Below, one piece after another: positions 859 to 30,310 of a stretch of 64,000 bases of DNA. Source of the DNA: Heterodontus francisci (taxonomy: Eukaryota); NCBI RefSeq assembly GCF_036365525.1, contig NW_027140453.1:496001-560000 (forward strand), given 5' to 3'. Positions within the stretch are counted from its first letter, which is position 1; every line of letters starts with the position of its first letter. The position numbers were made by a program, and so were the translations under genes. The notes under the pieces were generated by a model. That model was not told where the DNA came from. It worked only from the letters and a program-made list of their open reading frames with translations, and searched no databases.

Positions 859-864
859 TTTATT
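859..864 (-). promoter_or_regulatory. Probable polyadenylation signal of the TRBC-like transcript
   Basis: AATAAA on minus strand ~385 nt downstream of the stop codon. Confidence 0.5.
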
Positions 865-1247
865 AGCCTGCTTGATGTCACAAGAGAGAGAAGGGTGCAT
901 CATGAAGAAGCTCAACTTAAAGAAATAAAGCTCAGTGTGCAAACGGGTCAAAGATGGACAGGAGACATCTCAACTAGTTAAAGTAGCTTACCCAGTTCAG
1001 CTAACCAGCTGACAAGTGGTTAAATGAATTGAATAGAAATTGAGACATAAATTTTAATTATGTTGTAATCCAATTCCTCTGAAAGACCTAATGGGTTTTG
1101 CCAGTTGCCAAACTGTTACTAACCAATAGAAAATGACAACATATCAATGATAGGGATATGACCCAATAGCCTCCTCCTCCTTTCCCATATTTCTGCAGGA
1201 TATGTTGTGACGAGTGCCGTGTTGCAGAGTTTTTGGCCCCGGCTTAG

Positions 1248-1280
1248 TTAATCGAAATTTTTTGTCAACTTTCCCGATAT
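1248..1280 (-). CDS. TRBC: TCR beta-like constant region exon 4 (cytoplasmic tail ISGKLTKNFD*)
   Basis: Polypyrimidine+CAG acceptor (ccccttccag), phase 0 matching the TM exon end, 10 codons then TAA at 1250-1248; C-terminal FD resembles shark TCRbeta tails. Confidence 0.85.
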   Translation of the reverse strand: MSGKLTKNFD

Positions 1281-1865
1281 CTGGAAGGGGAAAAAAAGGA
1301 AGGAAAAAGATTGAGTCAGTCATGGAATATTTCTTCTACAATGCCCTGGGAAGGATTTCGAGTCAGTGGAAACACATTTCATGGCATTTAACAAGATCCA
1401 GAGGGAAGGATGAGTTCTTTTTAAAACTCAGAGCGTTGTTGTCATCTGGAAATCAGTGCCTGAAAAAGCGGACAATTGGATTAAGACATGAAAGGGTAAA
1501 TTTTGCAAGGTGATGAGGAAAGAGTAGGGGAGTAGGGCTCTCTCTCTGTCTCCCTTAAACGCTTCTCTCTCTCTCTCTTTCTCTCTCTGTCTCTCTCTTT
1601 CTCTCTTTTTGTCTATGTGTTTCTCTCTCTGTCTGTGTCTCTGTGTCACTCTGTCTCTCCCTTGTCCTCTCCTCTCTCTCTCTCTCTCCCTTCCTGTCCC
1701 TCCCACTCTCACTGTCTCTCCCGTATGTTCTCTCTGTCTATTTCTCTCTCTTAGGTTCTCCCTCTGTCTCTTCCTGTCTCCCTCTCTCTCTGTCTCTGTG
1801 TCTGTCTGTCTCTCCCTTAAACGCTCCTCTCTCTCTCTCTCTTCCTCTCTCTATGTGCCTCAATC

Positions 1866-2550
1866 TTCAAAGAACAAAGAACAGTACAGCACTGGAACAG
1901 GCCATTCGGCCCTCCAAGCCTGCGTCGATCTTGATGCCTGCCTAAATGAAAACGTTCTGCACTTCCGGGGACCATATCCCTCTATTCCCTTCCTATTCAT
2001 ATATTTGTCAAGATGCCTCTTAAACGTCGCTATCGTACCTGCTTCCACGACCTCCCCTGACAGCAAGTTCCAGGCACTCACCACCCTCTGCGTAAAGAAC
2101 TTGCCTCGCACATCCCCTCTAAACTTTGCCCCTCTCACCTTAAACCTATGTCCCCCTAGTAACTGACTCTTCCACACTGGGAAAAAGCTTCTGACTATCC
2201 ACTCTGTCCATGCCACTTGTAACTTTGTAAACCTCTATCATGTCGCCCCTCCACCTCCGTCGTTCCAGTGAAAACAATCCGAGTTTATCCAACCTCTCCT
2301 CATAGCTAATGCCCTCCAGATCAGGCAACATCCTAGTAAACCTCCTCTGTACCCTCTCCAAAGCCTCCACGTCCTTCTGGTAGTGTGGCGACCAGAATTG
2401 CAAGCAATAATCTAAGTGTGGCCTAACTAAGGTTCTGTACAGCTGCAGCATGACTTGCCAATTTTTATACTCTATGCCCCGACCGATGAAGGCAAGCATG
2501 TCGTATGCCTTCTTGACTATCTTTTCCACCTGCGTTGCCACTTTCAGTGA
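1866..2550 (-). mobile_element. CR1 LINE 3' fragment (ORF2 C-terminus + 3'UTR)
   Basis: LYRTLVRPHLDYCLQFWSP, LERVQRRFTRM, KFFTQRVV..WN motifs. Confidence 0.93.
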
Positions 2551-3179
2551 CACTTCCTTTCTCACTCTGTCTCTCTTTCATTACCCCAAACTCTTTCTCT
2601 CTTTATGTATGTAATACAGACACACTCTCTCACTCTCTGTTTATCCCTCGTATCTCAAATTCTCTTTGTTTCTGTCGATATGCCTTTCTCTCTCATTTTA
2701 TCTCCCCAGACTCTCTCTATATCTGTCACTCTCTATATTTATCTATTTCTCTCTCTCTCTATCTCTCACTCTCTCACACACACACACACACACAATTTAT
2801 CTCTAGCTATCCCTTTCTCTTACTCTCTCCAACTCTCTCAGCATTTCCCTCACTGGTTCTGTCATTCTATCTCTTTGTCTCTCTTTCTGTCAATCTCTCT
2901 CTCTCTGTCTTTTTCTTTCTCGCTCTCTGTCCCTCCCCCCCCCCCCCCCCATCACATTGTCTCTATTACTCGATAGGTACGTCTCTCTCTTTCTCCTTCT
3001 CTATCGTTCACTCTGTCCTCATGTGAGAGGGTGGGGGAGATTCAGGACCCCTTGGTGCAGGATCTAGATGGATTTCAGTCGACACTGTGGTGCTAATAGA
3101 CAGTCTGGTTTCACTGTCGAACCACATGCACAATGACATGGACTGGGTTCAGTGATTCACCCTATTTATTTACTTTTTT

Positions 3180-3425
3180 ATTTATTTAGAGATACAGCAC
3201 CAAAACAGTCCCTTCGGCCCACCGAGTCTGTGCCGACCAACAACCACCCACTTATAATAACCCTCCAGTAATCCCATATTCCCGATCACCTCCCTACATG
3301 AGGAGCAATTTACAACGGCCATTTTAGCTATCACCTGCAAGTCTTTGGATGTGGGAGGAAACCGGAGCACCCGGCGAAAACCCACGCAGACACAGGGAAA
3401 ACTTGCAAACTCCGCACAGGCAGTG
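3180..3425 (-). mobile_element. V-SINE/HE1-type SINE fragment
   Basis: GGAGTTTGCAAGTTTTCCCTGTGTCTGCGTGGGTTTTC...CTCCGGTTTCCTCCCAC core plus CR1-like tail ending in AT-rich repeats. Confidence 0.8.
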
Positions 3426-3828: not shown

Positions 3829-4094
3829 CTGGAAGAAATCAAAAAGAGGAAAAAACTTCAATTAGTTGTGCATAAATCGCAGTTTTCATATCACAGCAAG
3901 AACATAAATCGGGGGAAAATTCTCTGCACAGAGATTGGNNNNNNNNNNNNNNNNNNNNNNNNNNNNNNNNNNNNNNNNNNNNNNNNNNNNNNNNNNNNNN
4001 NNNNNNNNNNNNNNNNNNNNNNNNNNNNNNNNNNNNNNNNNNNNNNNNNNNNNNNNNNNNNNNNNNNNNNNNNNNNNNNNNNNNNNNNNNNNNN

Positions 4095-6189
4095 CTTTCT
4101 CTGTCTGTCTTTCTCTGTCTTTCTGACTCTTTCTCTCTCGTTCTCCTTTTCTCTCTGTATTTGTTTCCATGCCTCTCTGCATGTCACGCTCTATCTCCGT
4201 CACTCTNNNNNNNNNNNNNNNNNNNNNNNNNNNNNNNNNNNNNNNNNNNNNNNNNNNNNNNNNNNNNNNNNNNNNNNNNNNNNNNNNNNNNNNNNNNNNN
4301 NNNNNNNNNNNNNNNNNNNNNNNNNNNNNNNNNNNNNNNNNNNNNNNNNNNNNNNNNNNNNNNNNNNNNNNNNNNNNNNNNNNNNNNNNNNNNNNNNNNN
4401 NNNNNNNNNNNNNNNNNNNNNNNNNNNNNNNNNNNNNNNNNNNNNNNNNNNNNNNNNNNNNNNNNNNNNNNNNNCTCTATCTCTCACTGTCTCTGTCTTT
4501 CCCACTGTCTCCCTGCCTTTCTCTCCCTATGTCTCTCTCTTTCCTTTCCTGTCTCTCTCTCTCTCTCTCTGTCTCTCTCTCAGTCTCTCTCTCTTTGACC
4601 ATGTGNNNNNNNNNNNNNNNNNNNNNNNNNNNNNNNNNNNNNNNNNNNNNNNNNNNNNNNNNNNNNNNNNNNNNNNNNNNNNNNNNNNNNNNNNNNNNNN
4701 NNNNNNNNNNNNNNNNNNNNNNNNNNNNNNNNNNNNNNNNNNNNNNNNNNNNNNCTCTCTGCCTCTCTCGATCTGTCACTCTTTCTCTCTGTCTCTCTTT
4801 CTCTTCCTGTCTCTGTCTCTCTCTCTGGCTCTGGCTCTCCTCCTCTCCTTGTCTCTCTGNNNNNNNNNNNNNNNNNNNNNNNNNNNNNNNNNNNNNNNNN
4901 NNNNNNNNNNNNNNNNNNNNNNNNNNNNNNNNNNNNNNNNNNNNNNNNNNNNNNNNNNNNNNNNNNNNNNNNNNNNNNNNNNNNNNNNNNNNNNNNNNNN
5001 NNNNNNNNNNNNNNNNNNNNNNNNNNNNNNNNNNNNNNNTCTCTGTCTTTCTGTCTCTGGCTCTCCCTGTCTCTGCCTCTCTTTCTCTCTGTTTCTGTCT
5101 CTCTGTCCCTGTCTCTCTCTGTCTGTCTCTCTCAATCTCTGTCTCTCTGTNNNNNNNNNNNNNNNNNNNNNNNNNNNNNNNNNNNNNNNNNNNNNNNNNN
5201 NNNNNNNNNNNNNNNNNNNNNNNNNNNNNNNNNNNNNNNNNNNNNNNNNNNNNNNNNNNNNNNNNNNNNNNNNNNNNNNNNNNNNNNNNNNNNNNNNNNN
5301 NNNNCTGTCTCTGTCTGTCTTTCTCTGTCTGTCAGACTCTTTCTCTCTCGTTCTCCTTTTCTCTCTGTATTTGTTTCCATGTCTCTCTGTGTGTCACGCT
5401 CTATCTCCGTCGCTCTNNNNNNNNNNNNNNNNNNNNNNNNNNNNNNNNNNNNNNNNNNNNNNNNNNNNNNNNNNNNNNNNNNNNNNNNNNNNNNNNNNNN
5501 NNNNNNNNNNNNNNNNNNNNNNNNNNNNNNNNNNNNNNNNNNNNNNNNNNNNNNNNNNNNNNNNNNNNNNNNNNNNNNNNNNNNNNNNNNNNNNNNNNNN
5601 NNNNNNNNNNNNNNNNNNNNNNNNNNNNNNNNNNNNNNNNNNNNNNNNNNNNNNNNNNNNNNNNNNNNNNNNNNNNNNNNNNNNNNNNNNNNNNNNNNNN
5701 NNNNNNNNNNNNNNNNNNNNNNNNNNGCCTTTCTCTCTCTATGTCNNNNNNNNNNNNNNNNNNNNNNNNNNNNNNNNNNNNNNNNNNNNNNNNNNNNNNN
5801 NNNNNNNNNNNNNNNNNNNNNNNNNNNNNNNNNNNNNNNNNNNNNNNNNNNNNNNNNNNNNNNNNNNNNNNNNNNNNNNNNNNNNNNNNNNNNNNNNNNN
5901 NNNNCTCTCACTCACTGCCTCTGTCTTTCCCGTTGTCTCTCTGCCTCTCTCGATCTGTCACTCTTTCTCTCTGTCTCTCTTTCTCTTCCTGTCTCTGTCT
6001 CTCTCTCTGGCTCTCGCTCTCCTTCTGTCCTTGTCTCTCTGNNNNNNNNNNNNNNNNNNNNNNNNNNNNNNNNNNNNNNNNNNNNNNNNNNNNNNNNNNN
6101 NNNNNNNNNNNNNNNNNNNNNNNNNNNNNNNNNNNNNNNNNNNNNNNNNNNNNNNNNNNNNNNNNNNNNNTTCTGTCTGCCTCTTTCTT

Positions 6190-6226
<37 letters not shown>

Positions 6227-6515
6227 GTGTGTTTGTCTCTTTTTCTCTGTCTCCCTTTCTCTGTCTCTGTCTCTCTGACTCTCTCTGTCTCTCTCTCTCC
6301 ATCTCTTTATCTGTCTCTCTCACTGTCTGTCTGTCTCTGTGTCACTCTCTGTCTCTANNNNNNNNNNNNNNNNNNNNNNNNNNNNNNNNNNNNNNNNNNN
6401 NNNNNNNNNNNNNNNNNNNNNNNNNNNNNNNNNNNNNNNNNNNNNNNNNNNNNNNNNNNNNNNNNNNNNNNNNNNNNNNNNNNNNNNNNNNNNNNNNNNN
6501 NNNNNNCTCTGTCTC
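4095..6515. repeat. CT-rich degenerate microsatellite with multiple assembly gaps
   Basis: (CT/CTGT)n interleaved with N runs. Confidence 0.95.
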
Positions 6516-6879
6516 TGAGTGGTGAACCATTTGGGTGAACATAAGGTTATTGATGGTTACTGAGCCGAGGCGTCAAATAGAGTAATTGTAGAGATTAATC
6601 TTTATGTAACAGAATGGTGGAACAAGCTTCAACGGCTGAATAGCCTCGGCCTCTTCCAGTGTTCTTAAGTCTCAGCTATGATGTAGACTTTCCCAAGCTA
6701 TCCACCTAACTGAATTCCTTCATCCCTGGAACCTTTGTCGTGAATATTTTGTGCACCCTCTCTAACACCTTCACATCCTCCCTCAAGGCTGTAACATTGC
6801 ATTGATAAAGGTTCAGTATAGCTTCCTTGCTTTGGGCTCGGGTGGAGCAGAGGTGATTCCAGGCATTGCAGACACTCAC

Positions 6880-7217
6880 CTGCCTTCCTGCTGATCTTGG
6901 CATCTTGAGAAATCTCCGCGCCGTCTTTACTGTAATGGGTCACTTTGCAGGAATACTGCTTGCGGGCCCATTCGGCCATGGGAATCTTCAACCGACTGGT
7001 CCACGCTGTCGCGGCCTGCATCATCCTTTACCCGCCTGTCAGTCAGCACATCCTTCGTCTCGATCTCCTCGTTGCCCCCATGTCCAGGAGAACTTCACGT
7101 AGTCCGGGAAGAAGCCACTGGCCAGGCAGACAATGGTGGCTTTCTTACGGGCCCTGATTTCTTCTTCCGATGGCTCAAAAACGGTCATGGTGGGATGCTT
7201 AACCTCTTGGTCTGCCT
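6880..7217 (-). pseudogene. TRBC: TCR beta-like constant exon 1 (Ig C1 domain), apparently frameshifted
   Basis: cccacag acceptor, G|gtgagt donor; reads [48 protein letters not shown] / [24 protein letters not shown] / TSRLKIPMAEWARKQYSCKVTHYSKDGAEISQDAKISRKA over three frames; exon is 338 nt (336+2), extra G at ~7075-7079 and ~7001-7002. Confidence 0.85.
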
Positions 7218-7465
7218 CTGTGGGAGAGTGAAACATGAGTGTTAGGAACGACGGGGATGGAAGGGGGGGTGGCGAGTGGGGGTGGGGGGGGGCGGGGGGA
7301 GTGTGCTTACCCCAGCGTTCATTCTCCTTCACCACAACATCAACAGTTTGTTGTAGACTATAAAAGAAAGGAGGGAGGGAAAAACAGAGAATTACAGACC
7401 AGTTAGCCTTACATCAGTAGTGGGGAAAATGCTAGAGACTATTATAAATGATGTGATAACAGAAC

Positions 7466-10092
7466 AGAGATAGGGAGCAGGGGGCTGCAGGACGTTACAT
7501 AGATAGGGAGAGTTGTAGGGGCTGGAGGAGGTTACAGAGATAGTGAGGGTTGTTGGGGCTGGAGGAGGTTGCAGAGATAAAGAGGGTTGGAGGGGCTGGA
7601 GGGGGTTTCAGATATAGGGAGGCGTGTAGGCGGCTGTAGGAGGTCACAGAGATAGGGAGGGGTGTAGGGGGCTGGAGGAGGTTACAGAGATAGAGAGGGG
7701 TGTGGGGGCTGCATGAGGTTACAGAGATAGGGAGGGTTGTAGAGGCTGATGGAGGTTACAGAGATAGGGAGGGGTGGAGGGGGCTGGAGAAGGTTACAGA
7801 GATAGAGAGGGCGGTAGGGGCTGGAGGAGGTTACAGAGTTCAGCAGGGTTGTAGGGGGCTGGAGGAGGTTACAGAGATAGGGAGGGGTGTAGGGGCTGGA
7901 GGAGGTAACAGAGATAGGGATGGTTGTAGGGGCTGGAGAATGTAACAGAGATAGGGAGGTTTATAGGGGCTGGAGGAAGTAACAGAGGTAGGGAGTGCTG
8001 TCGGGGCTGGAGGCTGTTACAGAGATAGGGAGGGTTTTTTGGGCTGGAGGAGGTTACAGAGATGGGAGGGGTGTAGGGGCTGAAGGAGGTTACAGAGATA
8101 GGGAGGGTTGTAGGGGCTGGAGGATGTTACAGAGATAGGGAGGTTTGGAGGAGCTGGAGGAGGTAACAGAGATAGGGAGAACTGTGGCGACTGGAGGATG
8201 TTACAGAGACAGGGAGGGTTGTAGGGGCTGGAGGAGGTTACAGAGATAGGGAAGAGTGTAGGGGGCTGGAGGATGTTACAGAAACAGGGAGGGATGTAGG
8301 GGACTGGAGGAGGCTACAGAGGGAGGGAGGTGTGTAGGGGCTGGAGGAGGTGACAGAGATAGGGAGGGCTATAGGGTCTGGAGTATGTTACAGAGATGGG
8401 GACGGTTGTGTGTACTGAAGGAGGTTACAGAGATATGGAGTGGTGTAGGAGCTGGAGGAGGTTACAGAGATAGAGAGGGTGGTTGGGGCTGGAGGAGGTT
8501 ACAGAGTTCGGCAGGGTTGTAGGGTCTGGAGGATGTTACAGAGATAGGGACGGTTGTGTGTGCTGAAGGAGGTTACAGAGATATGGAGTGGTGTAGGAGC
8601 TGGAGGAGGTTACAGAGATAGAGAGGGTGGTAGGCGCTGGAGGAGGTTACAGAGTTCGGCAGGGTTGTAAGGGGCTGGAGGAGGTTACAGAGATAGGGAG
8701 GGGTGTAGGGGCTGGAGGAGGTAACAGAGATAGGGATGGCTGTAGGGGCTGGAGGATGTAACAGAGATAGGGAGGGTTATAGGGGCTGGAGGAAGTAACA
8801 GGGGTAGGGAGTGCTGTCGGGGCTGGAGGCTGTTACAGAGATAGGGAGGGTTTTTTGGGCTGGAGGAGGTTACAGAGATGGGAGGGGTGTAGGGGCTGAA
8901 GGAGGTTACAGAGATAGGGAAGAGTTTAGGGGGCTGGAGGAGGCTACAGAGGGAGGAAGGGGTGTAGGGGCTGGAGGAGGTGACAGAAATAGGGAGGGCT
9001 ATAGGGTCTGGAGCATGTTACAGAGATGGGGATGGCTGTAGGGGCTGGAGGATGTTACAGAGATCGAGAGGGGTGTAGGAGCTGGAGGAGGTAACAGAGA
9101 TAGGGAGGGCTATAGGGTCTGGAGGATGTTACAGAGATAGGGATGGTTGTGTGTGCTGAAAGAGGTTACAGAGATATGGAGTGGTGTAGGAGCTGGAGGA
9201 GGTAACAGAGATAGGGAGGGCTATAGGGTCTGGAGTATGTTGCAGAGATGGGGAGGGCTGTAGGGGCTGGAGGATGTTACAGAGATAGAGAGGGGTGTAG
9301 GAGCTGGAGGAGGTAACAGAGATAGGGAGGGCTATAGGGTCTGGAGTATGTTACAGAGATGGGGAGGGCTGTAGGGGCTGGAGGATGTTACAGAGATAGA
9401 GAGGGGTGTAGGAGCTGGAGGAGGCAACAGAGATAGGGAGGGCTATAGGGTCTGGAGTATGTTACAGAGATGGGGAGGGCTGTAGGGGCTGGAGGATGTT
9501 ACAGAGATAGAGAGGGGTGTAGGAGCTGGAGGAGGTAACAGAGATAGGGAGGGCTATAGGGTCTGGAGGATGTTACAGAGATAGGGAGGGCTGTAGGGGC
9601 TGGAGGATGTTACAGAGATAGAGAGGGGTGTAGGAGCTGGAGGAGGTAACAGAGATAGGGAGGGCTATAGGGTCTGGAGGATGTTACAGAGATAGGGAGG
9701 GCTGTAGGGACTGGAGGAGGTTACAGAGATGGGGAGGGGTATAGGAGCTGAAGGAGGTTACAGAGATAGGGAGTGGTGTAGGGGTTGAAGGATGTTACAG
9801 AGATAGGGAGGGTGTAGGGGGCTGGAGGATGTTACAGAGACAGGGATGGATGTGGGGTGCTGATGGATGTTACAGAGATAGGGAGGGTGTAGGGGCTGGA
9901 GGATGTTACAGAAATAGGGAGGGGTGTCGGGGCTGGAGGAGGTAACAGAGATAGGAAGGGTTGTAGGGGCTGGAGGAGGTAACAGAGATAAGGAGGGGTA
10001 TATGGGCTGTAGGAGGTCACAGTGTTAGGGAGGGCTGTAGGGGCTGGAGGATGTTACAGAGATAGGGAGGGTGGTAGGGGCTGGAGGAGGTT
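7466..10092 (+). repeat. ~38-bp G-rich minisatellite in the J-C intron
   Basis: Unit ~ACAGAGATAGGGAGGGGTGTAGGGGCTGGAGGAGGTT repeated over ~2.6 kb. Confidence 0.95.
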
Positions 10093-11749
10093 GCCCGAGT
10101 CCCAGTCCAGAGCTGCAAGTCTATCATCCAGGGCAACACTACCTCCAGGACTGAGAGAAAAGCGGACTTAGAACCGGAGCATGTAGGAAAGCGAGGGAGA
10201 GGTAGATGATAGAACAGAAACAAGGTGACAAGTAGAGAGGGGGCAAGCAGAGACAAACAACAGGGAAAAGGAAGAGGGCAAGTAGAGAGAGAGATAAGGA
10301 TAAGAAATAAAGAGGATGAGGAACTTAGTGGCGGAAAGCTTTAACGAAAGAGAAATAAAGTGAGGTCACACAAGATGACACCAAGGATGAGAGACTTCAG
10401 TTAATGTGGAGAGACTGGAGGAGCTGGGATTGTTCTCCTGAAGAGAAAGTTCAGGGGAGACTTAGCAGAGACGTTTGCAATCGGTCATGGATTTGACAGA
10501 ATAAATGAGGTGAAACTGTTTCCCGTGACACAAAGCAGTGAGCTGTTGTGATGTGGAATGCATTGCCTGAAAGGGCGGTGGGATTCACTCATAGTATTAC
10601 AAAGAGAATTGGGTCAACAGCTGAAGGGAAGGAATTGCAGGTCTATAGCGATAGGGTGGGAGGGAACTGGGATCAATCAGACAGCTGTAGAAAGGAGCCA
10701 ACCCTGGCACCATGGTCAATGGTCCAGAACTGTACTGCTCTCTCTGCCCGAATCTCTCTCTCTCTCTCTCTCTGCCTGAATCTCTCTCTCCTTTTCTCTC
10801 TCAATCTCAGTAAATCTCTCCCTCTCTGATTCTCTCCCTCTCTCCCTGAATCTCTCCCTCTCTCTCTGAATCGCTCCCACTCTCTCTCTCTGAATCTCTC
10901 CCCCTCTCTCTCTTGGGTTCTCTCCCTCACTCCCTGAATCTCTCCCTCTCTCTCTGAATTGTTCTCTCTCTCTCTAAATCTCTCTCTCTCTGAAACACCC
11001 CCCCCCCTCTGAATCGCTCCCACTCTCTCTCTCTCTCTGCCTCTCTCTCTCTGAATTGCTCTCTCTCTCTCTGTCTAAATCTCTCTCTCTCTCTCTCTGA
11101 AACACACCCCCTCCCTCTGAATCGCTCCCACTCTCTCTCTCTCTCTCTCTCTGCCTCTCTCTCTGAATCTCTCCCCCGCTCTCTAAATCACTCTCTCTCT
11201 GAAACTATCTCTCTCTCTGCCACTCATTCCCTCTCGGAGTGTTTCTCTCTCAATTTGTGATTCTCTCTCTGTGTTTCTCTCACTGGCTTTCTGTCTGCCT
11301 CTCTACTGCCTGCAGTCTCCCTCTCTCTCTCTCTCTCTCTCTGTTTCTGTTTATTTTTTCTCTCCGTTTCTTTCTCTCTCTCTCTTCCCTCTCTCTTTCT
11401 CTCTGTTTCTTTCCATCGATCTCTATCATCACTCTCTCGGTGTTTCTTTCCCTCTCTCTCTGTTTCTTTCCCTCTCTTTCTGCATCTTTCTCTCTCTGCT
11501 TCCATTTTTTTCTCGCCATTTTTTCTATCTCACATTTTTCTCTGCTTATTTCCCTGTTTCTGTTGCTTTCCCTTTCTGTTTATTTCCCCCTCTCTGCACC
11601 AAAGGGACACAATGATCAAATGGCCACTTTCAACACAATAATAAGATTCCATCTGGTCAGACACGATAAACTCAGAGATATTATTGTGTGTACCGGCTCC
11701 TTTTGCTCCCCAACTCAACCTCCAGCACCTGGACTCGAGCATTACTTAC

Positions 11750-11826: not shown

Positions 11827-12067
11827 CCCCTCCCCCAGCAAGCCTCTCGCCTTGCCTGGGCAGTTTGCTATCTCTTCAGGGGGCATGTGCCCCATGAGAT
11901 GGTCAACTCAGGATTCAGTCTGCTCCTGCCTGTCCTGACAGTGGAGGCGCCTTGCTGCAGGGGTGGGGATATCCTGGGCACTGGGGCAGGCAGTCGGGTA
12001 GCCTGTGAGAAGGGCAAGCGGACGGTGGAGTTCTTGCACGGGGTGAGCACAGGAATGTAACACGGTG

Positions 12068-12081
12068 CTATACTGACCTCC
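12068..12081 (-). CDS. TRBD: TCR beta-like D segment GGAGGTCAGTATAG
   Basis: Flanked by 5' 12-RSS (minus strand TTTTATTGA-ACTGCTTTGTAA-CATCGTG, 12082-12109) and 3' 23-RSS (CACCGTG-23 bp-GCAAGAACT, 12029-12067); 12/23 layout as for Dbeta; ~270 bp upstream of J. Confidence 0.9.
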
Positions 12082-12119
12082 CACGATGTTACAAAGCAGT
12101 TCAATAAAACCTCTCCCCC

Positions 12120-15100
12120 CTCTCTCTCTCATTTTTCTGTCCCTTTATCTCTCACTTCAAATTTCCCTTTTCATCACGTGTCCTTCCCTTTTCCGAGTTA
12201 TTATCCCATTGGAAGTCTCCTGTTTCCATCAACACTGCTCTCCTCCATATTTTAATCTTCTTCTCCCTGTATCAGTCTCTCGACAAGTCTTTCTCTCTCT
12301 GTGACTCCATTCCTGTCTCTGTCTGTCTTTCTCTCTCTCTCTCCATCTCTCCCCGTCCCTCTGAAACCCTTTTCTGTTTCTGTCTCCCTCTTTCTCTGTC
12401 TCTCCCTCTCTCTCTCTTTGCATCTCTGTCTCCCTCTCTCTCTGTCTCTCTGTCTCTCTCTATCTCTATCCCTTTCTCTCTATCTATCTATCTTCCTCTC
12501 TCTTTGTCTCTCTTTCTGTCTCCCTCTCTGTCTGTGTCTCTCAATCTCTTTGTCTTGATCTCTGTTTTGCTTCTTCCATTTATTCTTTTTCTCCCTTTCT
12601 CTCTCTCTATCTTTGCCTGTCTCTGATGTTCTTCCTTTTCTCTCTCAGCATCACATCTCTCACTGTCTCTCGTTCTCTGCCTCTCTTTGTCTCTTTCTGT
12701 CTCTCCCAGTCTCTCCATCTCTGTCTCGCTATTTCACTCTGTCTCTCTTTCTGTGTCTAAAACTATCACACTACATCTCTGTCTATCTGTCCCTGACTGT
12801 CTGTCTGTCTGTCTCTCTCTGTCTGGCTGTCTGTCTGTCTTTCCCTCTGTCTCTCTATTTACCTGTCTCTCTCTCTATCCATCTCTCTGTCTGCCTCTCT
12901 CTCTCTCTCTGTCCCTGTCTCTCCCTCTGCTTCTTTGTCTTGTTCTCTGTTTACCTTTACTCTTTCTCACCCTTTCTCTCTCTCTCTATCTTTGCCTGTC
13001 TCTGACGTTCTTCTTTCTTCTCTCTGCCTCTCACTCTCTCACGGTCTCTGTCTGCCTCTCTCTCTGTCTCTCTCTTTCGCTCTGTCTCTCCATCTGTCTC
13101 ACTACCTCACTCCGTCTCTCTTTCTCGGCCTCACGCTATTTCACTCGATCTCTGTCTGCTGTCTCTCTCGGTCTCTCTCTCTGTCTCTCCCTGTCTCTCT
13201 CTCTCTGACTCTCTCTGCCTCTTTGTCTTGTTCTCTGTATCCTTCCTCCCTTTACTCTTTCTCTCCCTTTCTCTCTCTCTATCTTTGCCTGTCTCTGACG
13301 TTCTTTTTTCTCCTCTCTGCCTCTTAGACTCACACTGTCTCTGTCTGCCCCTCTCTCCGCCTCTCCCTCTCTCCGTATCTCTGTCTCTCTCTGTCTATCT
13401 GTCTCTGTCTCGCTGTCTCTCCCTCCCTCTGTCTCTCTGTCTCTCTCTCCCTTTGTCTCTCTGTCTGCCTCTCTCTCTGTCTGTCAGTCTCTCTCTATGT
13501 CTCTCTCTCTCTCTCCCTATGCCTCTCTCTCACTCTCTCTCTGCCTCTCTCTATCTCTTTCTCTCTGTCTCTCTCTCTCGCTCGCTCTCTGTCTGCCTCT
13601 CACTCTTTGCCACTCTCTCTCTCTGCCCCATCTCTCTTTCTGACTCTCTGTCTTGTTGTATTCCTCCTTCCCTTTACTCTTTCTCTCCCTTTCTCTCTCT
13701 CTATCTCTGCCTGTCTCTGACGTTCTTCCTTCTCCTCTCTGCCTCTCACTCTCTCACTGTCTCTGTCTGCCTCGCTCTCTGTTTCTTTCTTTCTCTCTGT
13801 CTCTCCACCTGTCGCACTACCTCAACTGTTTCTCTTTCTGTGCCTGACACAATCTCACTCTATCTCTGTCTACTNNNNNNNNNNNNNNNNNNNNNNNNNN
13901 NNNNNNNNNNNNNNNNNNNNNNNNNNNNNNNNNNNNNNNNNNNNNNNNNNNNNNNNNNNNNNNNNNNNNNNNNNNNNNNNNNNNNNNNNNNNNNNNNNNN
14001 NNNNNNCTCTGTCTCTTTGTCTTGTTCTCAGTTTCCCTTCCTTCCTTTACTCTTTCTCTCCTTTCTCTCTCTCTATCTTTGCCAGTCTCTGACATTCTAA
14101 CTTCTCTCTGCCTCTTACTCTCTCACTGTCTCTGTCTGCCTCGCTCTGTGTTTCATTCTTTCTCTCTGTCTCTCCAACTGTCGCACGACCTCAACTGTTT
14201 CTCTTTCTGTGCCTGACACAATCTCACTCTATCTCTGTCTACTGTCTCTCTCTGTCTATCTGTATCTCTCTCTCTCTCTCTCTCTCTCTCGATCTCTCTC
14301 TCTCTACCTCTCTTTCTGTTTCTCTGTCTGCCCCCTCTCTCTCTTTCTTTTCTCTCTCTTCGCTCCTGTCTCTCTCAGTCTCTTTGTCTTGTTCTCGGTT
14401 TCCCTTCCTTCCTTTACTCTTTCTCTCCTTTCTCTCTCTCTATCTTTGCCTGTCTCTGACATTCTAACTTCTCTCTGCCTCTCACTCTCTCACTGTCTCT
14501 GTCTGCCTCTCTCTCTGTTTCTCTCTTTGTCTCTATCTCTCCATCTGTCTCACTACCTCATCTGTCTCTCTTTCTGTGCCTAACACTATTTCACTCGGTC
14601 TCTGTCTACTGCCTCTCTCTGTCTCTCCCTCCCTCTGTCTCTCTGTTTGTCTCTCTCTCTCTTCCTTTCACTCTCGCTCTGTCCCTCTCTCTCTCTGCCT
14701 CTTTGTCTTGTTCTCTGTCTTCCTTCCGCCCTTTACTCTTTCCCTCCTTTTCCTCCTACTTCTTTGCCTGTCTCTGACGTTCTTCTTTTTTCTCACTCTG
14801 GCTATCAGACACTCACTGTCTCTGTCTTTCTCTTTCTCTCTGTCTCTCCATCTGTCTCATTACCTCACTCTGTCTCTCTTTCTGTGCCTAATACTATCTC
14901 ACTCTATCTCTGTCTACTTTCTCTCTCTGTCTACTTTCTCTCTCCATCGCTCCCTCTCTGTCTGTCTGTCTCTCTCTCTGCCTGTCTCTCTCTCTGTCTT
15001 TCCCTCTGTCTCTCTACATCTCCCTCTGTCTCTCTCTCCCTCTGTCTCTGTCTCTCTGTCTCTCTCTCTGTCTCTATCTCAGTCTCTCGCATTCACTCCA

Positions 15101-15630
15101 TCTCTGTCTCTCTGCCTCACTCTGTCTCTCTTTTTCAAACGCGATATTACTCGAACTCCGTCTATCTGTCTCTCTCTCTGTCACTGTGGGTCTCTGTCTC
15201 TGTGTTTCTCTCTATTTTTGTCTCTTTCTCTCTCTCAGTCTCGCTCTCTTTGTCTCTATCTCTCTCTCTCAGTCTCTCGCAGTCACTCCATCTCCGTCTC
15301 TCTGCCTCACTCTTTCTCTGTTTTTCAAACGCTATATTACTCAATCTCCATCTATCTGTCTCTCTCTGACTCTCTCTGCCTCTTTGTCTTGTTCTCTGTA
15401 TCCTTCCTCCCTTTACTCTTTCTCTCTCTTTCTCTATCTCTATCTCTGCCTGTCTCTGACGTTCTTCCTTCTCCTCTCTGCCTCTCACTCTCTCACTGTC
15501 TCTGTCTGCCTCGCTCTCTGCTTCTTTCTTTCTCTCTGTCTCTCCATCTGTCGCACTACCTCAACTGTTTCTCTTTCTGTGCCTGACACAATCTCACTCT
15601 ATCTCTGTCTACTGTCTCACTCTGTCTATC

Positions 15631-15665
<35 letters not shown>

Positions 15666-17100
15666 ACCTCTCTATCTGTCTCTCTCTCCCTCTGTATCTC
15701 TGTCTGCCCCCTCTCTCTCTTTCTTTTCTCTCTCTTCGCCCCTGTCTCTCTCTGTCTCTTTGTCTTGTTCTCGGTTTCCCTTCCTTCCTTTACTCTTTCT
15801 CTCCTTTCTCTCTCTCTATCTTTGCCTGTCTCTGACATTCTAACTGCTCTCTGCCTCTCACTCTCTCACTGTCTCTGTCTGCCTCTCTCTGTGTTTCTTT
15901 CTTTCTCTCTGTCTCTCCATCTGTCGCACTACCTCAACTGTTTCTCTTTCTGTGCCTGACACAATCTCACTCTATCTGTCTACTGTCTCTNNNNNNNNNN
16001 NNNNNNNNNNNNNNNNNNNNNNNNNNNNNNNNNNNNNNNNNNNNNNNNNNNNNNNNNNNNNNNNNNNNNNNNNNNNNNNNNNNNNNNNNNNNNNNNNNNN
16101 NNNNNNNNNNNNNNNNNNNNNNNTCTCTGTCTCTTTGTCTTGTTCTCGGTTTCCCTTCATTCCTTTACTCTTTCTCTCCTTTCTCTCTCTCTATCTTTGC
16201 CTGTCTCTGACATTCTAACTTCTCTCTGCCTCTCACTCTCTCACTGTCTCTGTCTGCCTCTCTCTCTGTTTCTCTCTTTGTCTCTATCTCTCCATCTGTC
16301 TCACTACCTCATCTGTCTCTCTTTCTGTGCCTAACACTATTTCACTCGGTCTCTGTCTACCGTCTCTCTCTGTCTCTCCCTCCCTCTGTCTCTCTGTTTG
16401 TCTCTCTCTCTCTCTTCCTTTCACTCTCGCTCTGTCCCTCTCTCTCTCTGCCTCTTTGTCTTGTTCTCTGTCTTCCTTCCACCCTTTACTCTTTCCCTCC
16501 TTTTCCTCCTACTTCTTTGCCTGTCTCTGACGTTCTTCTTTTTTCTCNNNNNNNNNNNNNNNNNNNNNNNNNNNNNNNNNNNNNNNNNNNNNNNNNNNNN
16601 NNNNNNNNNNNNNNNNNNNNNNNNNNNNNNNNNNNNNNNNNNNNNNNNNNNNNNNNNNNNNNNNNNNNNNNNNNNNNNNACTCCATCTCTGTCTCTCTGC
16701 CTCACTCTGTCTCTCTTTTTCAAACGCTATATTACTCGAACTCCGTCTATCTGTCTCTCTCTCTGTCGCTGTGGGTCTCTGTCTCTGTGTTTCTCTCTAT
16801 ATATGTCTCTTTCTCTGCCTTTCTCTCTCTCAGTCTCTCTCTCTTTGTCTCTATCTCTCTCTCAGTCTCTCGCAGTCACTCCATCTCCGTCTCTCTGCCT
16901 CACTCTGTCTCTGTTTTTCAAACGCTATATTACTCAATCTCCATCGATCTGTCTCTCTCTCTGTCTCTGTGGGTCTTTGTCTCTATGTTCCTCTGTCTAT
17001 GTATCTCTTTCTCCGCCTTTCTCTCTCTCTGTCTCTCTATCTCTCCCTGTCTCCCTCTATCTCTCTATCTGTCCCTCCCCTCCCCACCCTATCACAGACT
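12120..17100. repeat. Long CT-rich low-complexity tract with internal higher-order duplications and gaps, between D and the V region
   Basis: Pyrimidine-rich strand; recurring blocks such as CACTACCTCAACTGTTTCTCTTTCTGTGCCTGACAC. Confidence 0.95.
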
Positions 17101-17620: not shown

Positions 17621-18159
17621 CTTCCACTGGAAGCTGTGTTTGTAATCTGTAAATCAGCGAAACAAGAGCTTTGAGTCTTGTGAGGAGCTACATGAAGACT
17701 GAAGTCAGTGATTTAGGTTTGCACAACTCCTCCCTCCCTGATTGGAAGTCACGCCCCTGTCTCGATGTTTGGCTGCAAGTATAAGTTGTTGTTGCGTTTG
17801 TTGCTCTTCGTCTTCTGCTGAAGTTGTTGCTGCATTTGTTGGTGTTTTTCCTCAAGTAGTTGTTGTATTCGTTGGTGTTAATCTTTCTCTCTCCCACTGT
17901 CTCTCTGTCTGTCTGTCTGTCTCTCTCTCATGTCCCTTTAAGATCTTAGGATGCTAATGAGCTAAATTCCAGCACGTGTTCACGTGACTCTGTGCCAGAG
18001 TCACTCTGTAACTGTAGCACCTACAGGCAGGTCCTGTAATAAGTTAGCTCAGTACTGTGTATGATAGTTCAGCTGTAAATAGACTTGTTTATGATCTTCA
18101 TCGAACTGGACTCCACGCATCTCATTTATGTTGCATCAAACAACATTATGAACTCACAA

Positions 18160-18830
18160 CACTAACAGCTAATATGAAGGTGCCGAAAGCAATTCGGAAG
18201 GCTAATGGTATGCTGGCCTTCATTGCAATGGGATTTAAGTACAGGTGTAAAAATGTCTTGTTGCAATTGTATAGAACCTTGATGCGACAGCACCTCTAGT
18301 ATTGTTACAGTTTTGTTCTCCTTATCGAAGGAAGGACATACTTGCCATGGAGAGAATGCAGCAGTGTTTCATCAAAATAATCCCTGGCATGGCGGGTTTG
18401 TCTTCGGAGGAGCGATTACAGAAACTGGGTCTGTATTCTCTGGAGTTCCAAAGAATAAGAGGTGATCGCATTGAAACTTACAAAATTCTGACAAGACGTG
18501 ACACGATGGATGTGGATAGGATGTTCAGTTTAGAATCAGGATACACTGTCTCCAAATAAGTTGCAGGCCATTTAAGACTGAGATGAGGAGGAATTTATTT
18601 AACTGAGAGAGTTGTGAATCTTTGGAATTCTCTACCCAACAGGGCTTTCGTAGCTGACTACATTGAGCATGTTCGAGACTAAAAGAGCTAGATTTCTGGA
18701 TACTAATGACATCAAGGGAGATGGGGATAGTGGGGGGGGGAAATGACTCAGAGGTAGATGATCAGCCATGAGTCGGTTCGATGTGCCGAATGGCCGACTC
18801 CTTCTCCTATTCCCTATGTTCCTATGTTGT
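18160..18830 (+). mobile_element. CR1 LINE 3' fragment
   Basis: KANGMLAFI, LQLYRTL, EERLQKLGLYSLE motifs and CR1 tail. Confidence 0.88.
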
Positions 18831-20738: not shown

Positions 20739-20777
20739 GGTTTTTGTTGAACTGCTCCAGCTCTCTGAGTCACTGTG
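20739..20777 (-). promoter_or_regulatory. V1 23-RSS (CACAGTG-23-ACAAAAACC)
   Basis: Perfect heptamer and nonamer, 23-bp spacer. Confidence 0.97.
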
Positions 20778-22079: not shown

Positions 22080-23835
22080 ATGTAGCATCAGCAAGCAATT
22101 GGGAAGGTTAATGTTATGTTAGCCTTTATCGCAAGAGGATTTGAGTACAGGAGTAATGAAGTCTTGCTTCAATCGTGGAGAACCTTGGTTAGACCACACC
22201 TGGAGTACTGTGTGCAGTTTTAGTCCCCTGACCTTCGGAAGGATATTATTCCCATAGAGCGAGTGCTAAGAAGGTTCACCCGACTTGTTCCCGGGATGGC
22301 GGGACTGTCCTATGAAGAGAGATTGGGGAAACTGGGCCTGAATGCTCTGGAGTGTCAAAGAATGAAAGGTGATCTCATTGAAACCTACAAAGTCCTTAAA
22401 GGGATAGACAGGGTAGATGCAGGTAAGAAGTTTCCTCTGGTTGAAAGAGAAGGTAAGTCAGACACTAGAGTGTGTAAAATGGGTAAAGTGAAAGTGTTCG
22501 ATCGGCTGTCTGAACATAAAGTGGATAAAGCACCAGCACCAGATGAGATGTATTCAAGGATACTGAGGGAAGTGAGGGTGGAAATCGCGTTGGCCATAAT
22601 TTTTCAGTCTTCCTTAGACTCAGGGCTGGTGCCAGAGGACTGGAGAATTTCAAACGTTACACCCTTATTCAAAAAAGGGGGAAAGATAAGCCCAGCAACT
22701 ACAGGCCAGTCAGTTTAACTTTGGTGGTGGGGAAACTTCGGGAAAAAATAATTCGGGACAAAATCAATAGTCACATGGACGAGTTAATTAATGAAAGACA
22801 GCATGGGTTCCATCAGGGAAAATCATGTTGAACTAACCTGCTAGAATTTATTTGGAAAGGAAACAGAGAGGGTTGATGAGGGCAATGCTGTGGATGTGGT
22901 GTACATGGACTTTCAAAAGGCGTTTGATACAATGCCACACAACAAACTTGTGAGAAAACTTGTAACTCGTGGAATAAAAGGGACGATAGCAACATGGATA
23001 CGAAATTGGTTTAGTGACAGAAAACAAAGAGCAGTGATTAATGGATGCTTTTTCGGGCTGGAGGAAGGTTTGTCGTCGAGTTCCCCAGGGATCAGTGTTC
23101 GGACCCTTGTTTTTCATGAGATATATTAATGACCTAGACCTTGGTGTACAGGGCACAGTTTCAAAGTTTGCCGATGATACGAAACTTGGAAGTATTGTGA
23201 ACTATGAGGAGGATAATGTCAAACTTGAAAAGGACAGAAACAAGTTGGTGGAATGGGCAGACAGGCGGAGATGAGGTTCAATGCAGAGAAATGTGAAGTG
23301 ATTCATTTTGGTAGGATGAACAATATAGAATAAAGTGCACAATTCGAAAGGGGGTGCAGGAGCAGAGAGACCTAGGTGTATATTTGTATAAGTCATTAAA
23401 AGTGGCGGGACAGGTTGGGACTGTTTTCCTTGGAGAAGAGAAGGCTGAGAGGTGATTTGGTGTTGGTATTCAAATTCATGAGGGGGCTGGACAGAGTAGA
23501 TAGAAAGAAACTATTCCCGCTCCTGAAAGGATCAAGAATGAAGGGGCACAGATTTAAAGTATTTGGTAAGAGAAGCATAAGTGACATGAGGAAAAACTTT
23601 TTCACGCAGTGATTGGTCAAGGTCTGGAATGCGCTGCCTAAGAACATGGTGGAGGCAGGTTCAATTGAAGCATTCAAAAGGGAATTAGACAGTTATATGG
23701 AAAGGAAGGATGTGCAGAGTTATGGGGAGAAGGCAGGGGAATGGAACTGAGGGAATTTCTTTTCCAGAGAGCCAGTGCGGGCACGATGGGCTGAATGACC
23801 TCCTTCTGCACTGTAACAATTCTGTGATTCTGTGG
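22080..23835 (+). mobile_element. Composite CR1 LINE RT fragments
   Basis: DVVYMDFQKAFD, VPQGSVFGP, SKFADDTKL motifs, frameshifted. Confidence 0.93.
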
Positions 23836-25445: not shown

Positions 25446-25462
25446 CCCATTCATCCACTGCA

Positions 25463-25501
25463 GGTTTTTGCAGCTGAGGATCCGCTTTCTCAGACACTGT
25501 G
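25463..25501 (-). promoter_or_regulatory. V2 23-RSS (CACAGTG-23-GCAAAAACC)
   Basis: Perfect heptamer, 8/9 nonamer, 23-bp spacer. Confidence 0.95.
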
Positions 25502-26336
25502 CGATACTACAAGTGCAGAAATAGACAGCGGTGTGAGATGGAGCGGCGTCTCTCAGTGCCAAAGTAAACAGTGTATTGCTGGCTCTGTCTGCCTTAAATG
25601 ACTCGGACGTGTAATTGGTGACAGACCCTGTTCCAGCAGAATAGAACAGAGCTTCCAGTGCCCTGTCTGGTTGTTGTCTGTACCAGTACATTAATGTATA
25701 GCCAGTATTCTTCAGCGTGCATCTGAGTGTTGTCGACTCTCCTGCGGAAAGTGATAGGATAGAGGGTGACTGTTCCACATAGGAGGAGAGTATTCCTGTG
25801 GGACGGAACATCGATTAGATTATTATTTCAGTCAATAATGGATTGGAGCAGAGGCTGCATTACAAGAAAGAGAGGGCTTACATTAATATATCGCCGTTCA
25901 GGACCTCAGGGCAACAGAAAGGGCTTTGCAACCAATGTAGTTACTCCCTCAGGACGGCCTCTGCGACAGTGCGGCACTCCCTCAGTACTGCCTCTGCAAC
26001 AGTGCTGCACTCCCTCAGTACTGCCTCTGCGACAGTGCAGCACTCCCTCAGTACTGCCTCTGCGACAGTGCAGTATTCCCTCAGTACTGCCTCTGCGACA
26101 GTGCAGCACACCCTCAGTACTGCCTCTGCGACAGTCCAGCACTCCCTCAGTCCTGACACCTGGGGTGTTAGTTTTGACTTTGAGCTCAAGTGTTCTGGAG
26201 TGAGACTCTGACACAGCAGTGTTACGGAACAGAATCACCGCTGACATTACAATACATTATTCGACACAGTTTCTGACTTTGACTTACGTGGGAAGAGTGC
26301 AGCCATCAAGATTAGACAGAGAACTTCATGCAACAT
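25502..26336 (-). CDS. TRBV: Intact TRBV-like segment V2, a different family (leader 26288-26336, V exon 25502-25795): MLHEVLCLILMAALFPRILSSYVEQSP...WYRQ...AVYFCTCSI
   Basis: 49-nt leader with gtaagt donor, cacag acceptor, open V domain with canonical Cys/Trp, 23-RSS. Confidence 0.93.
25955..26155 (+). repeat. 33-bp minisatellite in the V2 leader intron
   Basis: CAGTGCAGCACTCCCTCAGTACTGCCTCTGCGA x ~6. Confidence 0.9.
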
Positions 26337-28332
26337 GATTTCTTCATTCGATACTAACTCGATGTGTGAACGTGTGGAGTTTTCAACAACACACTTGCAG
26401 GCGGTTTCTATATTGTATCCAATTAAATACCCAGCATCCGGTTGTCATTGTTATTGGCAGTCACTTACTGCGACACTCTGCTCCACCCCATTACTTTACA
26501 TAGCAATGTTGTGGAATGATACAACACAGGAGGATAGGGGGAGATTGAATAGAGGTGTTCACATTTCAGAAAGGGATTTGATAGAGTAGAATTCAGGGAA
26601 ACAACCCTCCATACCCAGAGAGTGTGTACATCCCTTATTGCCCCTGAGAAGGTGGTGGTGAACCATCTTCGGGAATACCTGCTGGGCCATATCAGAGGGC
26701 AGTTAACAGTCAACTACATTGCAGTGGGTCTGCAGTCACATATAGGCCAGACCGGGTAATAATGGCAGATTTCCTTCCCTGAAGGTTATCAATGAATACG
26801 TTGGCTTTTTACGACACTCCATGTTCAGAATTGCTCTTACTTTCCATTACAGATTTTATTTATTTACTTAATTAAATTTAAATTCCATTTCTGCCCCTGC
26901 TGAGAACTGAACTCATATCTGGGGATCATTAGTCCAGGCCTCTGGATTACTAGTCCAGTAACATAACTGCTCTGCTCCCGTACCTCGTTGCAGAATCGGA
27001 GTTAAAGTGTGAAATAGTTCACTGGTCTGAACTGCTAGTTTCTTTGAAGAACACATCAAATGTGACTCGAGTCTGAGATGAAAGTGGGTAAAGAGTTTTC
27101 AGCAGCTTCTGAACTCGCTGTCAGGAGGCAGGTGTCCCAGAGATGAAGGTATCTGGAGAGCGGTCTCGCCTTTCTACAGTGTGAAACAGTGCTCAGATGG
27201 CTAAGGGTTCTGAGCTGGGTTAGTTCCTGTACATTGGGGAGTTGTTCACCTCTGTGTAGTGAAGGTTAGAGGGAGATGAACCAGACTGGAACCAGGGATG
27301 AGGGACTTCAGTTACTGTGGAGAGACTGTAGAAGCTGGGGGTTTATCCCCTTAGAGCAGAGAAGGTTAATGGAAGATGTGATTCTAGATATTGAAGATCA
27401 TAGAGGATTTTGATAGATAATTGATGACAAACCAGATCATCAACTGGTTAATATATAGAAAATCTATGAAAAGATGGGCATTCATTACATTACTGCAATA
27501 TGTTTAATTAATTCATACAAACTGTAATCACCTAAAGATATAGTTAGATAGATAGAGAGACAGAGAGATAGATAACCAGGTAGAGAGATAGATAGATCGA
27601 GAGACAGTCAGGTAGACAGATAGATATAGAGAGAGGTAGAGAAATAGAGGGATCGAGGGAAAGTCAGATAGGTTGTGAAATAGCGAGCTGGATAGAGAGA
27701 CAGTCAGGTAGACAGGTAGATATAGAGAGAGAGGTAGATAGAGGGAAAGTCAGATAGGTAGAGAAATAGCGAGCTGCATAGAGAGACAGTCAGATAGACA
27801 GATAGATATGGAGAGAGGTCGAGAAATAGAGAGATAGAGGGAAAGTCATATAGGTAGAGAAATAACGAGCTAGATAGAGAGACAGTCAGGTAGACAGATA
27901 GATATGTGGAAAGGTAGAGAAATAGAGAGATAGAGGGAAAGTCAGAGAGGTAGAGAAATAGCGAGCGAGAGCGACAGTCACTGCCCCTGTAAAAGGCAGG
28001 GTTGTTAATTGTCATTCTCTCATTTTACACCAGCTTGGTAACTGGAGTGAGAGAGAGGGATGGAGGGAGAGAGAGAGAGAGAGGGGGGGAATGCAGAGAG
28101 GGACCGACAAGAAGTTATTGATCAGTCATGATCTCATTGAAGGACGGAGTGTTTCCGAGGTGATGAATGTTCTCCTTATGTTCCCAGGTTACTGTTAAAG
28201 TGTGTTCCAGACTCTGATGTTTATCATGGTCCTACAGCGCACTCTGCTGTCCCTTTGGAGAAAGAAAACACCGTGACATCAAACCACACCGTATGTATGT
28301 ATGTATGAATGTTTGTATGTATGTATGTATCC

Positions 28333-28383
<51 letters not shown>

Positions 28384-28756
28384 GCTCTATCTATCTGTGT
28401 TTATCTGATCTTCACTTCACATATTAAAGTCTTTAATTATCTCTCTAAGACGGATGAAGGTTTACCCTTCATTCTTCTCCTTTCTGGAACAAAGATCCCC
28501 CGATGTTCAAACTATCTTGATAACTTTAACCTCTGTTTCCTGATATCATTCCTGTAAAGTCTATTTCACAATTCCCCTGTGCTTCTATTTCTAACCAGTC
28601 TCTATCTATTTAAATCCGTCCTGTCTTGTGAAAAACATGTTCCCAATGATGAAAACACCCAACAGGACGCAGCACCGCCTGGTTTTATCTGAAACAGGTG
28701 TTTCCTGCTGCCTTTGGGGTTTTTGTTGAACTTCTCCATCTCTCTGAGTCAGTGTG

Positions 28757-29213
28757 AAGACTCCAGGCTCAGAGATACACGGCCGAGTGATTCTCCTGCA
28801 GGCTGGAGGTCTCCAGGTTGAACTGGGAGTCAGTCGGTCTCTCCACAGTGAAACCGCCCACCGTCCCCTCTGGATCCACATAGTTAGCAATACTGGAGTA
28901 AAACATCAGCAGCGGCTCCTTCCCCGGCTCTTGTCTGCACCAGTACATGGAGATGATACTGCTGCTCCCCTCCAGAGTGCACCTCAGTTCCACTCCTTTC
29001 CCGGGTAATCTGGAGACAGCGGCAGGAATCTGGTGGATAGTCTGTGAGTTCACATCTGGGAGAGAGATGGAGAGAGGAGGAGATCAGTAAACAGGGAACT
29101 TCTGGGAATGAAAGGGAGACAGAGAGAGGAGAGGAAGGTTATTAACAATAATTTTTTGCATTTCACACTCACTTACAATGAAACAGGATTCTCAGACACA
29201 GTAACTGATGCAT
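28757..29213 (-). pseudogene. TRBV: TRBV-like pseudogene V3 (V1 family)
   Basis: Leader 29177-29213, V exon from 29055; Cys104 codon is TGA (28771-28769), WYRQ->WCRQ; RSS CACACTG-23-ACAAAAACC at 28718-28756. Confidence 0.92.
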
Positions 29214-29954
29214 CTTTCACTTCAACTTGTTCTATTAATAGACATAGGAGTGAGATCAGGAGCTTAGAGTCTTGTGAGGGTCCAAATCCACTCTTTACAA
29301 ATCATTGGGAGGAACATGAAGAGCGTTAGGAAGTGATACAATGTTGGAGACGCCCATACACCCAGGTGAACAAATCACAATCAAATTGTTTGCCAATCTA
29401 CTTCTCTCTCTTTCTCTCAGTTTACCTTCCACTCTCTCCCTCTCTCTCAGTTTACCTTTCGCTGTCTCCCTCTCTCTGACTCTCTCTCTCTCTCTCAGTT
29501 TACCTTCCGCACTCTCCCTCTCTCTCAGTTTACCTTCCACTCTCTCCGTCTCTCTCTGACTCTCTCTCTCTCTCTCCCAATTTCTTAGTTTTGCTATCTC
29601 TTTAGTTCTTTCTCTGTCACTGTGTTTGTCTCTATCTCTATCGCCCTATCTGTCTCAGGCTTTGTTTTTTTTAATCTCAGTCTCTCTTTCTCTCCTCCTC
29701 TCTCCCGCTGTCCACTCTGTCGATCTCTCTCTCTCATTATGTCTCTCTTGCTGTCTCGCTGTCTTTGACGCTATCTTTGTCTCCCTATCTCGTGACATCC
29801 TTATTCATCGTTCTTTGCACCCTCGCCAGTACCTGTAAATTCAATTTGTCACTACAATCATAACTCAGTTCTTTTTATTGTAATAAACGCTTTCACTCTG
29901 CATAAGGGCCACAGAGCAATTTTATCTGAAACAGGTGTTTCCTGCAGCCTTTTG

Positions 29955-30310
29955 GGTTTTTGTTGAACAGCTCCATCCCGCTGAGTCACTGTGATGTCTT
30001 CAGGCACAGAAATACAAGGCCGAGTGATTCTCCCGCAGGCTGGAGGACTCCAGGTTGTACTCGGAGTCAGTCGGTCTCTCGGCAGTAAAATGGTCCACCG
30101 TCCCCTCTGGATCCACATAGTTAGCAGTATTGGAGTAAAACATCAACAGCGGCTTCTTCCCCAGATCTTGTCTGTACCAGTACATGCAGAGGGTACTGCT
30201 CCACTGTCCCCTCTGAGTTCACCCTTTGTGCAGTTAGGGAGTAAAACATCAGCTGCGGCTCCTTCCCCAGATATTGTCTGTCCCAGTACATCTGAGTGAT
30301 ACTGGTACCA
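29955..30310 (-). pseudogene. TRBV: Fused 5'-truncated TRBV-like fragments V4/V5 (V1 family) with intact 23-RSS
   Basis: 30185-29994 MYWYRQ...ALYFCA* (Trp->TGA) with CACAGTG-23-ACAAAAACC at 29955-29993; a second fragment QMYWDRQYLGKEPQLMFYS...EGTVE at ~30200-30310; no FR1/leader. Confidence 0.88.

Follow-up and report, generated by a model that had tools for sequence, protein, structure and literature searches.

The element described here is a T-cell receptor (TCR) beta-type unit of the horn shark, Heterodontus francisci, made up of variable (V), diversity (D), joining (J) and constant (C) segments. The window is the whole stretch of 64,000 nucleotides (nt) that was analysed (NCBI RefSeq assembly GCF_036365525.1, contig NW_027140453.1, positions 496,001 to 560,000 of the forward strand); positions are counted from its first letter. 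The minus strand carries the whole V-D-J-C unit, and every part named in an initial annotation, made from the sequence alone, was located where that annotation had placed it. The window probably holds one V-D-J-C unit of an anciently diverged C-beta isotype, called type B below, whose C gene is now a transcribed pseudogene in the horn shark. Type A refers to a different horn shark C (ENDTIRPAKVTVFEPSPEEIREKKKATVVCLVSDFYPDNIKIHW ... KRFD), which is found in the intact J-C models XP_067881638 and XP_067882223.

The exon pieces of the window C were searched singly; for alignments only, a conceptual C was assembled in scripts, with X marking the two breaks. The best single-stretch matches among 1.84 billion proteins are XP_067881640.1 (81%), two proteins of Scyliorhinus torazame (76%) and a whale shark protein (67%); the same list of matches includes both type-A models. 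In local alignments, the conceptual C is 64% and 63% identical to two Scyliorhinus (catshark) proteins, 55% to a Rhincodon (whale shark) protein, 36% to the horn shark type A and 34-38% to TRBC of tetrapods and the coelacanth. The type-B proteins of other sharks are XP_038657067 of Scyliorhinus canicula, XP_072356531 and scyTo_0012005 of S. torazame, and g47757 of Rhincodon typus. Their likeness to the window C (55-64%) extends over all four C exons. They have in common with it the hinge GLCEGN (identical in the catsharks), the membrane pattern TYxLLISKSxLYM and the tail K.FD. They differ from it by their open reading frames, whereas the window C has two frameshifts in exon 1 and a less hydrophobic membrane span. 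Type A also resembles the window C in its four-part layout, the hinge cysteine, the membrane Lys and Tyr, the FD end and the motif EPSxEEIRxxKKATxVCL; overall identity is nevertheless only 36%, and type A is grouped with bony-vertebrate TRBC, not with type B.

The C-domain phylogeny that had been proposed as a check places the window C outside the type-A group. In the maximum-likelihood tree, it forms a group with the proteins of catsharks and the whale shark (support 87/86), and type A goes with bony-vertebrate TRBC (support 91/93). The outgroup consists of immunoglobulin (Ig) light-chain constant domains; the alignment is short and includes no alpha, gamma or delta outgroups, so that the depth of the split is to be read as indicative. 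The high identity to XP_067881638 and XP_067882223 expected of a canonical type-A C-beta was not found, and a canonical TRBC identity of the window C was rejected on the 36% value. The features expected of type B were found, namely the position in the tree and the hinge, membrane and tail motifs. The "second divergent TRB isotype" suggested in the initial annotation thus holds for the type of gene (36% to the shark's own C-beta, 55-64% to catshark and whale shark). Two other kinds of search gave little. Homologue searches that started from the catshark, whale shark and horn shark proteins brought back hardly anything but those same proteins. When solved structures were searched with the whale shark C, most matches were multi-domain antibody heavy chains, and the chain type could not be told from them.

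The C gene is formed by four exons, all with good splice sites and all on the minus strand. Exon 1 (7217-6880, 338 nt) encodes the C1-set Ig domain; its first piece matches Pfam C1-set (E = 2.6e-7), and an exon 1 piece, compared with solved structures, has its best single-domain matches in TCR beta chains. Exon 2 (3828-3811, 18 nt) encodes the hinge GLCEGN with the interchain cysteine. Exon 3 (3645-3536), which is an open reading frame, encodes the connecting peptide and the membrane span (ATYTLLISKSFLYMAKITIVQL). The latter keeps Lys and Tyr, and has Lys and Gln at positions that are hydrophobic in catsharks. Exon 4 (1280-1248) encodes the tail ISGKLTKNFD followed by a stop codon; the 3' untranslated region then extends to an AATAAA at 864-859. 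The four-exon C of the initial annotation is correct as to exons and splice sites; exon 1 is frameshifted, which the title of that annotation did not state. Read in three frames, exon 1 has stops in every frame, and its conserved motifs are divided over the three frames, the last being AWTSRLKIPMAEWARKQYSCKVTHYSKDG. Its length of 338 nt, compared with the 336 nt needed by the splice phases, fits two 1-nt insertions, one near 7081-7075 and the other near 7013-7000, each giving a +1 frameshift. The open frame of a functional TCR constant gene was not found: two frame changes are needed, and the frame is not restored in any contig.

Contigs of four public runs from one horn shark sample, probably the sequenced animal, were aligned to positions 6510-7460. 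For runs X5 and X7 the label RNA is a guess; their behaviour is RNA-like (no depth on the unique intron 6798-6861, exon 1 covered). The DNA contig family closest to the window agrees with it at all 18 places that distinguish the paralogues and has no indel at 7081-7075. An indel at 7013-7000 was found in none of the DNA or RNA contigs. As no frame-restoring indel is present in the contigs, the frameshifts are not assembly slips; an assembly error behind them was rejected, DNA and RNA contigs being without an indel at the breaks. Another family of DNA contigs, which differs by about 7-10%, is short of 1 nt at 7080/7081. RNA contigs of a sister copy lack the same nt and have an extra nt after 6966, which matches the reading of XP_067881640. 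At least three distinct type-B exon 1 sequences are found at 6955-7047 in the contigs of this one animal: a window-like form, a DNA family with a stop at 6988, and an RNA form with the insertion at 6966 (that of XP_067881640).

The RNA contigs are confined to exon 1, with zero depth on the intron 6798-6861. One matches the window exactly at 7103-7218 and ends at the acceptor. Another matches 6879-6954 and continues for 25 letters past the donor (6880), which is the length of exon 2 plus 7 nt. A sister-copy RNA contig of 369 nt spans 6880-7220 and has 28 further letters. That RNA contigs end at both borders of exon 1 shows the dead C gene to be transcribed, with splicing on either side of this exon; the splice partners would be J and exons 2-4.

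XP_067881640 ("T cell receptor beta chain MC.7.G5-like") is the sister type-B copy of the horn shark. It has the same J (VVNDPATFGG.TRLTVL) and is 87% identical to the window C exon 1 over 67 residues. It reads FSWAGGNEEIE ... GRMGPASSIPAK, then stops. The first frameshift of the window is absent from it, the second is shared, and an insertion of 1 nt after 6966 is its own. This copy is present in the RNA contigs. Because one frameshift is common to both copies, that damage is older than their duplication. Between the window and the sister copy, 12 codon changes alter the protein (one of them to a stop) and 5 do not; this pattern is neutral. XP_067881640 and the type-A XP_067881638 are encoded on the same contig of 1,569,485 nt, two accession numbers apart.

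The initial annotation had also claimed V segments with 23-spacer signals, a D between a 12- and a 23-spacer signal, a J with a 12-spacer signal and a four-exon C. These parts are real, though the D and J signals are degenerate. On the minus strand, a scan for heptamer, spacer and nonamer gave exactly four strong signals with a 23-nt spacer, and every one of them immediately follows a V-set exon, as in a rearranging locus of TRB type; three of the four are near perfect. The D has a 5' 12-spacer and a 3' 23-spacer signal, both degenerate. The C has the four parts of a TRB-type gene: a C1-set domain, an 18-nt hinge exon with a cysteine, a membrane exon with the conserved Lys and a short tail. 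The V complement consists of two intact segments (Va and Vb), two pseudogenes (Vc and Vd) and one stub. The two intact V segments of the initial annotation are confirmed by open exons and near-perfect 23-spacer signals. No further V, J or C segment was found at 30.6-64 kb in the scan of the window.

All V segments are on the minus strand. Va (leader 21232-21196, V exon 21073-20778) has the canonical Cys23, Trp41 and Cys104. Its signal at 20777 is near perfect (heptamer CACAGTG, 23-nt spacer, nonamer ACAAAAACC). Va is 52% identical to the V joined with a type-B C in a gene model of S. torazame, and both end in CAWSL. Vb (V exon 25795-25503) is intact, with Cys23, Trp41 and Cys104 present and a signal at 25501 (CACAGTG, 23 nt, nonamer GCAAAAACC). 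The sole plausible leader of Vb is a candidate at 26336-26288 (MLHEVLCLILMAALFP, then GTAAGT); a leader immediately 5' of the exon was rejected, as no ATG with a donor is found there. The leader intron of Vb would be about 490 nt long and contains a 33-nt minisatellite (ctgcactgtcagagggtcagtactgagggagtg). Arrays of this minisatellite are found at 25900-26250, inside that intron, and at 30400-31640, just upstream of the V array. Vc (leader about 29213-29177, V exon 29053-28757) is a pseudogene with TGA at the second cysteine codon; its signal has the heptamer CACACTG, a 23-nt spacer and ACAAAAACC. Vd (30315-30003) is a truncated and partly duplicated pseudogene without leader or framework region 1 and with a stop after Cys-Ala; its 23-spacer signal, near perfect, begins at 29993. 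The stub (19215-19183) is the 5' end of a V exon of the Va family: splice acceptor and VNSQTILQSPA, then unrelated sequence.

The D segment, GGAGGTCAGTATAG, lies at 12081-12068 (with its signals, 12029-12109) on the minus strand between a 12/23 signal pair. Its 5' signal is of the 12-spacer type, with the heptamer CATCGTG and a weak nonamer; its 3' signal is CACCGTG, 23 nt, GCAAGAACT. The heptamers match at 5/7 and 6/7 positions and the nonamers at 5/9 and 6/9. This is the only site of the window at which a 12/23 pair flanks 6-25 nt, and none was obtained in 30 Markov shuffles. The D is not of the usual G-rich type. The J segment, NDPATFGGGTRLTVL, lies at 11795-11750 (with its signal, to 11830) on the minus strand; it encodes FGGGTRLTVL and is followed by the donor GTAAGT. 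Its heptamer is CTCTGTG, with the key GTG kept, the spacer is 12 nt long, and the nonamer matches at 5/9. An additional J in the window was rejected: a single J of the FGXG type is present, and the other match to the regular expression, at 2362, sits in a retroelement. Nine runs of N at 3939-6506 are all within C intron 1, where they are split by CT-rich low-complexity islands; the exon edges nearest to them are 3828 and 6880, and no exon is touched. Three more N runs, at 13875-16679, are in satellite DNA between V and D. No exon and no reading frame crosses an N run.

The following history is proposed. Type B would be a second TCR-beta-type constant isotype of sharks, and its predicted genes in catsharks and the whale shark are intact. 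The type-B C of the horn shark would have become a pseudogene, by two 1-nt insertions in exon 1 in the case of the window copy. The shared frameshift would have come first; the copies would then have been duplicated, and each would have acquired lesions of its own. The locus would still be open and transcribed, with exon 1 spliced, and no beta chain could be made from it. The working C-beta of the horn shark would be another gene, of type A, 36% identical. Within the wider TRB region, further D-J-C clusters may still draw on the two intact V.

Several points weigh against this reading. The horn shark genome may contain an intact type-B copy at another place. For catsharks, a functional type B is suggested by predicted proteins only. 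The evidence from reads consists of contigs of a single sample, which can neither gauge the level of expression nor prove absence. The joining of exon 1 to the window J and to exons 2-4 is consistent with these contigs, and goes no further than that. The closest DNA contig family (about 17x in X1 and X3) also lacks 1 nt at 7148, in a GGGCCC run of C exon 1. At this position the window is matched by an RNA contig from that sample; the missing nt could reflect an allelic difference, another copy or an error in the contig.

The alternative that survives best concerns the autonomy of the unit, and is given nearly even chances. The unit would be an inverted type-B cassette, tail to tail with a type-A C-beta, and its V would come from a shared TRB pool. 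The type-A XP_067881638 and the type-B XP_067881640 are indeed neighbours by accession number on one 1.57-Mb contig, and the start of the window lies just 858 nt past the poly(A) signal of the C gene; the partner C is not seen within the window. A self-contained cluster of the shark Ig kind, as put forward in the initial annotation, would need neither borrowed segments nor others close by; on this point the window contains no additional V, J or C up to 64 kb.

It is improbable that the window holds a working second beta-like locus of the horn shark, with frameshifts that are errors or with an intact allele or copy elsewhere, producing a chain of low diversity. Two intact V with near-perfect signals, open exons 2-4, the transcription and splicing of the gene, and the intact appearance of this gene type in other sharks are in its favour. 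DNA and RNA contigs alike, however, are without the frame-restoring indel, the sister copy in the annotation is also broken and has one frameshift in common with the window, the D and J signals are degenerate, Lys and Gln replace hydrophobic residues of catsharks in the membrane span, and the codon changes between the copies look neutral. The working low-diversity chain put forward in the initial annotation accordingly fails in the horn shark, with exon 1 frameshifts confirmed by contigs, a broken sister copy and degenerate D and J signals. That the window is the 3' end of the ordinary horn shark TRB, with the canonical C-beta and the last V segments, is very improbable: the order V(23), 12-D-23, J(12), the four-exon C and the exon 1 matches to TCR beta among single-domain solved structures all agree with TRB, but identity of the C to the intact XP_067881638 and XP_067882223 is no more than 36%, and the C belongs to a different group of the tree.

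Beyond the reading of the window as a type-B unit with a dead C, a wider proposal can be made, tentatively. Sharks would have two beta-type isotypes, split about as early as sharks and bony vertebrates. Type B would have its own small V-D-J-C unit and a conserved V family; catsharks and the whale shark would use it as a functional chain that rearranges separately, and it would have been lost in the horn shark lineage. If so, it would be an undescribed lineage of TCR chains with a lineage-specific loss.

Teleosts, axolotl and squamates provide known cases of divergent second C-beta genes and of duplicated TRB loci. No description of a second C-beta in cartilaginous fish was found in the literature searched (most subscription journals were outside its scope). 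Salmonids have multiple TRB loci, TRB1-4, with divergent C (PMC10464911), and squamates have a duplicated TRB locus, TRE (PMC11754216). Like the shark case, these loci show more than one V-D-J-C unit per genome, opposite orientation being possible, and distinct C subgroups. The C subgroups of salmonids share about 70% identity, and every one of them is functional (PMC10464911), whereas the two horn shark types share about 36%, and one of them is dead. The window gives the full layout of a shark type-B unit (V family, D, J and C) and yields primers' worth of sequence for testing whether sharks have two kinds of beta chain. The horn shark unit being a transcribed relic, the search for a working version is directed to the catshark and whale shark. 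As regards the horn shark, the finding is ordinary: a pseudogene cluster within a large, repeat-rich TRB region.

The rest of the window, 30.6-64 kb, contains long Ser/Thr/Pro-rich repeat arrays (about 40-57 kb), located downstream of the heads of two D8C/uromodulin-like genes. These cysteine-rich heads are found at 57817-58572 and 61539-62222, both on the minus strand (DPCVNH..LDQPWRS..; ..VTRTVC..YFVYELK..AAYCTG). The J-C intron contains, at 7460-10100 on the minus strand, about 45 copies of a satellite of about 60 nt (..ctccagcccctacaaccctccctatctctgtaac..), which is preceded by a GA-rich microsatellite at 10760-11560. Reverse-transcriptase fragments of retroelements are found at 2146-2565 (minus strand) in C intron 3, at 18057-18559 (plus strand) in the V-D spacer, at 22263-23274 (plus strand) between Va and Vb, and at 34446-35409 (minus strand) upstream of the V array.

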